This document shows, piece after piece, positions 47,901 through 53,900 of a stretch of 64,000 nucleotides of DNA. The number at the start of each line of letters is the position of its first letter. Positions within the stretch are counted from its first letter, which is position 1. The notes beneath the pieces are model-generated. The model was not told the DNA's origin and ran no database searches. It saw only the letters and a program-made list of their open reading frames with translations. Source of the stretch: Malacoraja senta (Eukaryota); contig CM075998.1 of NCBI GenBank assembly GCA_038087875.1, positions 4,340,001 to 4,404,000 of the forward strand, given 5' to 3'. Both the position numbers and the translations under genes were made by a program.

Positions 47901-50900
47901 CATTATGTACTTGAATATACTGTATGCTAGATCACATTGTGCACCTAATCTCATCTTGCTCTAAACCATATTGTGTACTGGATTACATTGAATATTGGGT
48001 CTTTATTCTATATAATAATACAATTATATATATGTATTATCACATGAGTACTGGAGCATGTTGGTTGTTGAATCACTTTGGGCACTGAATTACACTGAGT
48101 ACTTATTTATATCGGGAACTGGATAATATTGAGTACTTTGTCATTACTGGATCACATCCTGCGGTGCTTCAAGATACCCATCAAAGATTCAACATTTGGA
48201 AACTGTTGTGATATTTATGATGTACAGTTAAATGTGATATATGTTCTGCTAAAATGTGCGAGGAAAGTTTCATAAAACTAGGTTCAATACACCATAATCC
48301 ACCAGGATTTGGTCAGAGGCTGTATGTGTTTGTCATTTCGAGGTGCAGTTTAAAGGCAAGCAATTTCTGTTTTTGCACACACAAGTTTTGCAAAAGATTG
48401 CGTAAGGATTGTAATGCATATAGTCTGGCAAAATATTCTACAGCGCGCTATAACGATCGCAAAAATGCAGCATTCAATGAAAGCGCGGCAACAATCATCA
48501 TGACAGCACTTTGTGTATGAAGAGGTTCGTATAATGCTTTGCCCTGTCTTGCAGAAACATCTTAAAAGCGCTAAAGATCAACAGATTATTTCTCAACTGA
48601 TGTGATTCTTGTTATGTAGCAAAATGCGGCCGCAAATTTGCAAACAGCAAATGATATGAATGATCAGTTAATCTGTTTTGGGTGGTGTAGGTTGAGTGCT
48701 AAGCAGCTGCTTAAAGCATTGAACTTGCGCATAACAGCCCAGTGCAGCTATTTCCACAGCAATGTTCCTTGGACAATGGAGTGTACCAGCCACATTTTGA
48801 CAGCCAGGCGCTAAAGGCTTTAATTAAAGAAGTGAGCCACCATATACTGCATGGAGGGCCGCTCCTCCTCAGAGAAACCTGGTGCAGCAGGTCTGGAAAT
48901 AAATCGTGGAGCTTGTAAATGCTGCTTCCAGAACTCAACGAACCTGGCAAGATGTTAGGAAGAAGATGGGAGATCTCAAGAAATCAGCTAAGGTAAGTCA
49001 ATAATATTAATATGCACCTGCCATAAGTGGACATGCAAGAAAGTCAACCCTGGCAAACTTCTCATTCTTTTTGCCTCTCTGTTGAAACTGGTATGAGACA
49101 GTTCACCAGTGCAGCACTGCCAAGAGACACGAGGGCAATGAATGGGGATATTTATGTCTAAGTTATGAACTGCTTATGCAAATCTCTGTACGCAACATTT
49201 CCAAAAGGGGATAGAGACAATGACTGTTTGGAAGTGAATCTAGCAGGGTTATACGCATTCATTGAAAACATCTCGTACGCCACAAAAACTGTGCAACTGC
49301 ATGTGCAACTGTCAGTGCTCTGGGTACATTCAACCTATCAATACTGTTCTTCTCCTTGCAGGACAAGATGGCCTTCAATCAGGGAGAACAGTGCTGCATT
49401 GGACTCAGCCAATTCGTGCCCCTACCCTATGCAAGAACGACACTTTGGAACTAATAAGCAGGGAGAGTATAGAGGGAGTGGGGGACGGCAAAGCTGCAAG
49501 CTTCCAACGAGTTCATGGCTAGTATGATAATATTTTTGTTGTATCATTTTGATCTGTTAAATAACTGTCGATAAGGCACATGCTAACCTAAGTAACAGTG
49601 CAGATCATACCGTAGAGTGACGCATTATCTTCTCTTTTCACAGAAATGGAAAAACAGAGTGTAGCAGTATCTGCAAGAAAGGCCACAATCACAGCACTTT
49701 ATAGCACAATCACAATATCAACCACCAGGTTCAGCTACATACTTCAAAGAACATAGATAGGGAGATTTAGGAGGAGCCTCAGGGGTAAGTCACAGTCCAC
49801 GGATGAGAAGGAGCAAGAGGGCCTGTTGATCATCTACTGAAGAAAAAAACAGCATGGTTACTGATGCAGTATCAGAATATCTGAGCATTTTAACCCCTTC
49901 GGATCCGCTGAAAAGCAGAACACTCCTGTCTGAGCAAATCATCGGCTGGGATCATTTACGTACGGGATACGTTCGTGCAAAATCCTGAAAGGATTGTGGA
50001 GGAGCACACTACCTAGATCTGTGCAGTTACAGATGAATGGTTGGTTACGCTGGAGTTTTCCACAGTGTGGTAACTCCAATGGACCTGCAGTGGTAACCCC
50101 TCAGTGCAGATCAAAGGCACACTTGGGACTTTTCTCATAAATGTTCATACTACCACGATAGAGATTTAAGGCTCAGCCCTTAAAGGTGCTCTTTTGACAC
50201 CCTCAGATCATTTGGAGATTGGATGCAGGCAGTCGTAAAGAATTTGCGGATTTTACAGATGCCTGAATTCTATTCTCACATGAGTGGATGTTGAAAGAAT
50301 GCATATTGCCAGGTGATATTTAAAGAGATGATCGGGTCTTACATTAATCCAAGCTGTCAAGATTTCCGACGTAACAATAGGTATGTAAGAATAAGCAATA
50401 CGACCGGTCGTAAACATGAGTGAAACTACTGGATTCCGTGCCACATAGAGGTTTCATGCCACTACTATTACAACAGCCTGACTATGGAACTCACCACCAG
50501 CCTACACAATCATTCCTTTCAAGAGGGAATCAATGAGGAGAAGATGAGGTAGGCCAGTTCTACCCCAACAAACTCCAGACGCAAAGTACAATCTTCACTA
50601 TATACATAATGGTTGGAATAAAATCACTGGATTTAATTTGTACATTCTGCTGTGTGTTTATTTGTCTTTGATTAAAGTTAAACCTGATTGAGGATTCTGG
50701 ATGGGCATGGATGATATTTGAGGAATTGTACTGATGAGTACAACTGCAGCTGGTTTGGGATGCTTCACTAATATATTTGGATGGCAATTTTATTACATGG
50801 AACAACACTGAAAGACATCTTGAATTTGTATCTATGGACCAGCTTTCTTGCTGCCCTGCTAGTTCAGCAACTATATCTCTGAGTTCCGTATTGCTATGTC

Positions 50901-53900
50901 TTTGACATTCTGTTCTTCTTCCAATGCAGAGTGAAAGAAAGAAATTTGCATTTACATTGCTCCTCTCACATGTCCCCATTTGTTTAATTACGAATAAATT
51001 ATTTCGAAAATGGACTCGCTGTTGTTTTATAACCAAATGCGGCTGCTAAATTTGCATACAGCAAGATCGCACAAGCGGCAAATGAAAGTTATGACCACCT
51101 GATCTGCTCTTGGTGTGGTTGGTTGGAATTAATATTGGCTGAGAAACCAGGAGAACTCCATGCTTTTCTTTGAACAGATCCTTTGCATCCACCAGAAAAG
51201 TCAGTACTCCACTGAAGTGGCAAATTAGGTGATGTGAACTAAGTGGTGTTTAGAGATATGATCTTCCAATTCAGAAAAGCGATTGTTATCATGTGAGCCA
51301 AGCTGACAAAGCAAAGTCACGTAGAATTTTCTAATAAATCATGAGAAATTATAAGATATCACTTGATCACAAGACATTTGGAACACCACTTTAAGATCCC
51401 TGAAGTTAGTATTTTCTGTAAGTATCCTGGGTTATAGCTGGGCCTTTATTGTACTCATGACGCTGCTTCTGTAGATATTGGTGCATGGATGTAATGGTCC
51501 TTGGCTGCAGAGAGTTCTCTTGGTCTCCCAGAAGCCACTCATTTACTCCTCCTTCCACTTCAAGTACAGATGTCACAGGTGATTGCCTTAAAGTGAAGAC
51601 ATGTCAAGAGTTCTTGGGGAGCCAAGTATTCACCTGCGTTTCTTGGTGCTGGAGCTGGAGCTGGAGCTGCACACCAGCTGGGCTCTGATAGAATAAAAAT
51701 CCCCTTTTCATTGATCATAATGCATAGCAACATTATGTGCAAGAGCCCAAACATGGGTGCTATTGCTGACTCTTGAATTCTGGAAATCCAGTAGATGCAT
51801 TGAATTCTGATGCCTTGTTGTATTGCTGGTGTTGATCCATAGTCAAAGTAATGAAGGGGTCGACTGTTAAATCATGCAAATGTCACGGTCTGGCCAAATG
51901 AAGCAGGCTTGCCCTTCAGATATCCCCAGGCCTTGACTGGAAGGATCAAAACACAAAGTTCGATGACCTTGGACACCTATTGATGATATAACATTGATAC
52001 TTGCCCGATTCCAAAAGTCGTAATTGAGGAGATGATACCAGTTGTATCTTAGCCTCACAGCTTACCCTTGACGACTATACCACTGTTCCGCAATTATTTC
52101 TAGGTCATTGTGCCTAGGTTCATGACCCAATATGATTTTCTTCTAGTGGGATATCTTGCATCCCTGATCTGTCCTCCTCAGCTAATTAAAGTCAGACGAT
52201 GTACTGATTGCAATATATGTGCTGACCTAACCAGCTGCTGGTGTACCTCTGTTGTGTAGCAACTTCGAGTGAAACAGGAGAACACACTTTAGGTGTGAAA
52301 TGGGTGCCTCAAAAATGGTGTGTGGAATTTAAGAACCAACCATGTGGACTTTAACCAGGTTTACTCACAAAATCAGTGCTGTAACACTGAGTAGCCCTCA
52401 GCCCAGCTACAAAAGAATGGCTGTGTGTTGTATCATCACACTCCTCAAATTATCAATGTTAACATATTACTGGGAGAAGATGATAACAGCGATACCATCA
52501 GTCATTTCCAGACTTATTATGAAAAAAAAAAAGTGCATCAAATATACTCTGAGTTGTAATCTCCATTTTGCTTCTTCTTCTAGGGTGAACCTGGAAAACA
52601 AGGAGCTCCTGGATCTGCTGGTGACCGAGGCCCCCCTGGCCCAGTTGGCCCATCTGGTCTTACTGGTCCTTCTGGTGAACCTGGACGTGAGGTTTGTCGA
52701 TCTTTTATACCACAATTCAATCATTATATTTTTTGTGTCATTTTCCAATTCTGACTGCTCTGTATTCCTCCAACAGGGCAACCCTGGTGCTGATGGTCCT
52801 CCTGGCCGTGATGGTTCAACCGGTCCAAAGGTATGGTGAATAATTTGTACTTTAACACTGAAGAGGATTAGTAACTTCCAAAAATGTAAATGCTCAAAAA
52901 AAAGTTAGACTGAAGCAGAAATAATATTGCGTACAAAAGAAGCTCCCTGTATCCCATTGATCTCATCGATTCCTAATTTCAGAAATGTAACCACACGTGG
53001 ACCTCTGTGAGGTTAGAGCTAAATTGCATTCAGAGCCTGAATAGAACAGAATTGTCTTTGGTCTGTGGTGATGCCACAGTTGGTGATTATATCAATGAAA
53101 ACCTCTCAAAATTTAAGAATTGGCTAACCAGGTAGTTGGTTTAAGCGTAGGGTATTATGGAGATAGGAAAAGCACCTGGGATTAAAATGACTAATTATGT
53201 AAAGGCTATAGATGAAAATGGATTAGTGAGACCAAATAACCTGTTTCCATGTTGTCATTTCTAAAATGATTCGATATAATGCTCTGAGAATGTCTGAAAC
53301 TCATATTATTGGGCACAGAAGTGAAGTCTCTGCATTTCCTCAGTGTGGTGACAATTTGAATCTCCAGGGACAAAGATAAACAACTAATATATTGCACCAC
53401 TTCAATTCAAATGCTTAAACACCTAATGTGTTAAGCTAACATAATTTTGATCTTTGTTCCTATCAACCAAAGGACAGCATTTGCCTGCAGAAATCCTGCT
53501 ATTGGAATGAACATGTAATAAAATGTGCAGATCTATACGGTTAGGTGCTGCCAATAAAGTCTATGAGAAAAATTATGAGAAATAATTAAAAACTGTCCAA
53601 ACAGACAACTAATAACCTACTATAAGAGTAGGAGCAATACAAAAACATTAAAGATAATAAATAAATAGTTTTATTGATAAATTAAATCTTCTACAATCAT
53701 CATATTTTCTGACTTTCATACATATTCAAATTGTTTTGCTCCACTGTACTGAATTGAATTGTGATATTATCTGTTGAGGTCACTTATAAATATGTCTTGA
53801 GTAATGTCAGTGCCAAAGTGAGGAAGCAAATCACGCAGACTGTGTATTTGTGCCCAGGCACAGGGAAAAGGACATGCATACAATTAGTACCAGTCTGAAA

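Follow-up and report, generated by a model that had tools for sequence, protein, structure and literature searches.

Two domain relics in a fibrillar collagen intron

The stretch of DNA analysed here (the window) comprises 64,000 nucleotides of contig CM075998.1 from Malacoraja senta (assembly GCA_038087875.1, positions 4,340,001 to 4,404,000, forward strand) and carries, on its + strand, a COL2A1-like fibrillar collagen gene. One intron of this gene contains two degenerate coding relics in convergent orientation, ~2.4 kb apart and ~3.1 kb from end to end (Table 1). The relic on the + strand represents a Myb/SANT-like DNA-binding domain, while that on the - strand represents the core of a HARBI1-like DDE transposase; the two are very probably the remnant of a single dead autonomous PIF/Harbinger element. 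An earlier note on this sequence had described such an element (once two-gene, now dead, convergent and located in a fibrillar collagen intron), a description that is supported by a Pfam match on the Myb side and by a chain test on the DDE side, as detailed below; all peptides quoted in that note were recovered in the six-frame translation where, and in the order in which, it had placed them.

Table 1. Positions (in the window) of the two relics and of the features that surround them.
Feature	Position	Strand	Basis or remark
Myb/SANT-like (trihelix) DNA-binding domain relic of Harbinger accessory protein	48790-48992	+	Pfam PF13873 Myb_DNA-bind_5
DDE transposase core relic (HARBI1-like, DDE_Tnp_4 type)	51362-51882	-	Local profile of 120 PF13359 proteins
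Possible N-terminal helix-turn-helix part of transposase	51883-52061	-	Resemblance by eye only
Spacer between convergent relics, formerly 3' parts of both genes	48993-51361		~2.4 kb, nothing recognisable
Host intron of COL2A1-like gene	46224-52583	+	6.3 kb, flanked by 108-bp Gly-X-Y exons 46116-46223 / 52584-52691; whole fossil inside

The Myb relic is interrupted by one frameshift (~48870-48885) and one in-frame stop (48900-48902) and is divided, in the six-frame translation, between a piece ending in RETW within 48715-48915(+) and a next piece within 48903-49001(+). The latter piece by itself matched PF13873 with 23.5 bits (E-value = 5.2e-5), exceeding the gathering score of this family (21.7). 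A read-through of 66 residues starting at PHFDSQ, with X at both breaks, matched positions 31-73 of the 78 positions of PF13873 (E-value = 6.9e-8; 32.8 bits); in all read-throughs, X alone was used to bridge breaks. The identification of the Myb/SANT side is solid. A second Myb exon (DKMAFN...TLELIS; 49356-49470) had also been proposed, as part of an intron structure said to be still legible; this candidate exon gave no match of any kind in the Pfam search, and we found no evidence for a legible intron structure.

For the transposase, a segment of 122 residues from the core of Harbinger-1_SS, printed in the supplement of PMC9179366, was used as bait, solely to fetch proteins. The fetched set consisted of 120 fish proteins, mostly named "putative nuclease HARBI1" and nearly all with PF13359, from which a local hidden Markov model (HMM) of 233 positions was built and searched, with filters off, against 3341 six-frame pieces representing the whole window. 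The top piece, 51409-51603(-), scored 12.3 bits (E-value = 0.012), and its upstream neighbours on the same strand, 51633-51707(-) and 51763-51882(-), took ranks 6 and 8. Taken along the - strand, the three matches (51843-51778, 51701-51657, and 51591-51439) are colinear with profile positions 12-34, 61-75, and 94-143, with a DNA gap of 26 codons where the profile has 27 positions and one of 22 codons where it has 19. A chain score, which requires matches to be on the same strand, in the same order, and at fitting spacing, was 20.0 bits for the window and was reached by none of 270 control windows shuffled in 300-nt blocks (mean, 6.4; standard deviation, 1.9; maximum, 16.0); the reversed window scored 6.3. 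In addition, an X-joined read-through of the core aligned as one domain to profile positions 12-164 with 31.7 bits, compared with at most 11.0 in 2000 within-part shuffles. Of these two tests, the chain test alone is independent of frames selected by eye. In its best block, the relic agrees with the profile consensus at about one residue in four, too few for placement in a named family, and the signal exists at the profile level only.

The core blocks appear in the order GFP...THV, KG.FYSI.AQLVC, P..S*H, WLLGD, and GILK....CL (asterisks denote in-frame stops). GFP is encoded at 51789-51781 and the stretch bearing VSNSTHV at 51779-51669; two further blocks, including HEYNKG, fall within the top piece, and the last block lies at ~51400-51371. 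Read-through of the core crosses five breaks, namely two frameshifts (~51780 and ~51643), two in-frame stops (51710-51708 and 51606-51604), and, at 51408-51406, a stop combined with a change of frame; a trinucleotide run occupies 51648-51668. For the block corresponding to the family motif N-R-K-G, a reading in a third frame (INEKG) had been put forward and was rejected as needless, since the block is explained by YDQ*KGDFYSI, which stays in one frame and has a stop in place of the R of the motif. The positions of the catalytic triad are assigned from what is established for IS5/Harbinger transposases. Aligned to the profile, the relic has Asn instead of the first catalytic Asp (S-N-S-T-H for I-D-G-T-H) and retains the second Asp (L-L-G-D); the column of the Glu, which is lost, is occupied by a Y beside a break. 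With an incomplete triad and at least five stops or frameshifts in its core, this transposase copy is dead, which is no argument against its descent from the family. The possible helix-turn-helix part on the N-terminal side resembles, as judged by eye, the G-I-S-Q-x-S/T region of Harbinger transposases (supplement of PMC9179366); it matched no Pfam profile, and the local HARBI1-like profile does not extend over this part.

Shared decay in related genomes

Two open reading frames (ORFs), P0001 and P0004, which were retrieved with the top piece (65 residues) as described below, sit on two Logan contigs, L001 (1557 nt) and L002 (2506 nt), respectively. The contigs derive from one or two related genomes and are 99% identical to each other. 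Together, these contigs align without a break to 49395-52199 of the window, at ~93% identity; all comparisons with them refer to this range, which excludes the Myb relic. Most stops and frameshifts are shared with the window, and both contigs have NSRHD in place of the NS*HV of the window. The chain score of L001 (25.3 bits) is higher than that of the window because NSRHD is retained, as a shared decaying ancestor predicts. Divergence is even, with 92-98% identity per 200 nt and ~95% in relics and spacer alike, and ~9 nucleotide differences in 51400-51600 result in seven amino-acid changes in the 65-residue piece. As judged from these sequence comparisons, the relic is under neutral drift.

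A search of sequencing runs found the stretch in six further organisms, four of which provided long contigs over 46650-52640 with ~96% identity; one of the runs includes a contig that extends over this whole range. The stretch was carried by all five of the related genomes examined, suggesting that the insertion predates their split. Neither a contig skipping the element nor an empty site was found in four related organisms, apart from a deletion of 52 nt in one run (X3), where 51811-51864, inside the transposase relic, is replaced by TTG, a further sign of neutral decay; as these genomes include no empty site, they do not define the ends of the element. In an RNA run, depth was ~67 over the intron vs ~14000-17000 over the next exon (<1%); the intron RNA is pre-mRNA rather than a transcript belonging to the element itself.

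One element or two

A Myb-like gene and a DDE transposase gene are the defining pair of autonomous Harbingers, both being required for transposition (PMC9179366; PMC9392472), and it is because the two relics match this known two-gene architecture that we assign them to one element. PMC9392472 and PMC9179366 cite Sinzelle et al. 2008 for the mechanism established in this family: the ends of the element are bound by the Myb-like protein, which imports the transposase, and the transposase cuts and pastes. By analogy, the living element would have encoded a Myb/SANT-like protein that bound its ends and recruited the transposase, and the DDE transposase would then have excised the element and reinserted it elsewhere. 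One copy may have inserted between two 108-bp exons of the COL2A1-like gene in an ancestor of several related species; neutral drift would afterwards have introduced stops and frameshifts into both genes, removed the first catalytic Asp, and taken the ends beyond recognition. Today, the remnant would be transcribed passively within the collagen pre-mRNA and then spliced out. It is an ordinary genomic fossil, without sign of function.

Several observations weigh against a single two-gene element. A single insertion for both relics would follow from the known architecture rather than from a demonstration at the locus. An inverted-repeat search over 47000-54000 yielded short pairs only, which were 74-86% complementary if longer than 16 nt, at chance level; as a terminal inverted repeat (TIR) pair, the sole pair that would enclose both relics (47992-48010 / 52115-52133; 19 nt, 79%) would cut into the expected N-terminus of the transposase. 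The ends of the element have probably decayed, and the 3-bp target-site duplication (TSD) that PIF/Harbinger insertions produce is unreadable because the ends are undefined; no second copy was found within the window. On the transposase side, none of ten stop-free - strand pieces matched any Pfam-A family even at an E-value of 10, X-joined DDE read-throughs of 44 and 122 residues found nothing in Pfam-A, and there was no Pfam-A match to DDE_Tnp_4, Plant_tran, or HTH_Tnp_4, including for the cleaner ORF P0001 (97 residues) of the related genome; P0001 and P0004 gave a sub-threshold SfsA match only. With tblastn, the 120 Harbinger proteins left the relic region at noise level (best scores of 22-25 bits everywhere in the window), and phmmer with the 65-residue piece against 1.84 billion representatives returned no true transposase; the returns were P0001 (89% identical) and P0004, both from the copy in related genomes, and low-complexity proteins. 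The 31.7 bits of the X-joined DDE read-through are inflated, its frames having been selected by eye. Neighbours in an ESM Atlas feature search (65-residue piece and P0001) were uninformative, a sequence search of the PDB with P0001 was negative, and a homologous-protein search with P0001 returned only itself and P0004. The earlier note had named the lack of profile matches, with frameshifts allowed for, as a refutation; by this standard the transposase fails, since the X-joined read-throughs matched Myb_DNA-bind_5 but not the DDE_Tnp_4 model of Pfam, and only the narrower HARBI1-like profile recovers the transposase. The DDE_Tnp_4-type match is accordingly weak and model-dependent.

It is unlikely that two independent events were involved, with a Myb/SANT-like relic and an unrelated, transposase-only Harbinger relic coming to lie 2.4 kb apart in one intron by chance; the Myb relic would then derive from a solo-ORF Harbinger variant, from another element, or from an MSANTD/NAIF1-type pseudogene. 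Solo-ORF variants with one of the two genes are known in other animals (PMC8437027), the intron contains other repeats (a multi-copy segment at 48644-48696 and an array of 29-nt units at 46671-47567), and no TIR pair encloses both relics, all of which would fit separate origins. However, the pairing is exactly the architecture that defines autonomous Harbingers, and two rare relics are unlikely to fall within ~3.1 kb of each other by chance; the even divergence from the related genomes, compared over the range without the Myb relic, also argues for a common origin.

It is very unlikely that only the Myb relic is real, the - strand DDE motifs being no more than a random pattern selected by eye over three frames. 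Such a pattern would be consistent with the lack of a Pfam match even for X-joined read-throughs, with the noise-level tblastn scores, and with the score of the best single piece, which was reached in 5 of the 270 shuffled windows; however, the three-block chain, colinear and correctly spaced, arose in none of these shuffles, the independently assembled L001 outscores the window on the same blocks, and the read-through forms a continuous alignment of 153 profile positions. Retention of the stretch for a host function, whether as a regulatory element within the intron, as a non-coding RNA, or as a domesticated remnant of coding sequence, is hardly conceivable, since its presence in every related genome examined and in contigs from RNA runs is outweighed by the equal divergence of relics and spacer, the shared stops and frameshifts, the high proportion of amino-acid changes among the nucleotide differences in the 65-residue piece, an RNA depth such as pre-mRNA would give, and the lack of an Rfam match.

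Known Harbingers and other features of the window

Autonomous vertebrate HARBI1-like Harbingers, such as Harbinger-1_SS from salmon and Harbinger3_DR from zebrafish, encode a Myb/SANT-like protein and a DDE transposase, as the single fossil element would have done; the colinear alignment of the fossil to positions 12-164 of the profile built from fish "putative nuclease HARBI1" proteins includes GFP, THV, KG.F.SI..Q..C, WLLGD, and G.LK....CL. Unlike autonomous Harbingers, the fossil has at least five breaks in its core, with the first Asp replaced and the Glu position lost, and it presents no recognisable TIRs (~25-50 bp in PIF/Harbinger elements; PMC9179366) or TSD and no paralogues in the 64-kb window or among the phmmer returns for the best piece. 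HARBI1 and NAIF1 (with MSANTD1/2/4) are host genes that arose through domestication of a Harbinger in early jawed vertebrates, and they share with the fossil the same two protein types and their ultimate origin (PMC9392472). However, HARBI1 and NAIF1 are intact, conserved, and separate host genes, whereas the fossil consists of adjoining neutral wrecks and represents neither their orthologue nor a pair of their pseudogenes.

Among cartilaginous fishes, Harbingers were not found in the elephant shark, and an examination of other species has been called for (PMC9179366); PIF-Harbinger elements have been reported in the whale shark (PMC8455134) and, in the grey reef shark, rank with the most common DNA transposons (PMC12498223). 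As Harbingers have already been published for sharks, a chondrichthyan Harbinger is unsurprising. The suggestion in the earlier note of an undescribed ancient chondrichthyan Harbinger lineage is unsupported, the ~20-30 bits of signal being far too weak for a tree. It is quite unlikely that an old Harbinger lineage, separate from the multi-copy skate and shark families and near the HARBI1/NAIF1 stock, survives in this fossil alone; if it did, the fossil could help date or root the domestication of these genes. The fossil accounts for about half of the 6.3-kb COL2A1-like intron as transposon debris and, as an old insertion common to several related species, could serve as a presence/absence marker; it also illustrates that very decayed Harbinger transposases can evade Pfam-A, yet be recoverable by a clade-specific profile combined with a colinearity test. 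Beyond annotation, its significance is small, and it touches no open question.

The ten longest stop-free pieces of the spacer gave no Pfam match at or above the gathering score. The longest spacer ORF, 50563-51045(-), is stop-free over 161 codons and is called as a gene of 136 residues on contig L002; its Pfam matches (DUF1573, TBSV_P22) are all sub-threshold and implausible, and it probably arose by chance. Rfam and tandem-repeat searches of the intron found nothing relevant to the relics.

The exon map of the host gene includes ~45 Gly-X-Y exons of 45-162 nt each, spanning 2933-59173, with C-telopeptide and C-propeptide exons 3' of these at 59120-61762, the translation of which includes RADQAA. 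This translation corresponds to that of human COL2A1, and the host intron is presumably intron 43, as in the earlier note, counting exons backward from the C-propeptide in the human COL2A1 numbering. The first kb of this intron is occupied by the array at 46671-47567, which consists of degenerate units of ~29 nt (…CCAGNCC…ATGTACAGTATAGAG…); Tandem Repeats Finder reported its best part only (46749-46817). Just upstream of the Myb relic, the segment at 48644-48696 (~50 nt) is multi-copy: in each of three related genomes, it matches multiple unrelated contigs over 35-38 nt each, with dissimilar flanks and a local depth that is roughly doubled; the window contains no other copies. This segment probably represents a piece of an abundant interspersed repeat and is presumably similar to a segment of a shark/ray short interspersed nuclear element.

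An interspersed repeat family of ~300 nt was also found in the collagen introns, at 2486-2789, 3335-3630, 18375-18673, and 27119-27422, as well as at 10682, 14134, and 35832; its conserved core (…GATACAGCGCGGAAACAGGCCCTTCGGCCCAC…) yields spurious Gly-X-Y-like ORFs on the - strand. Other repeat families in the window are represented at 5613/26162/38974, at 16762/24874/63212, and at 45232/56561.

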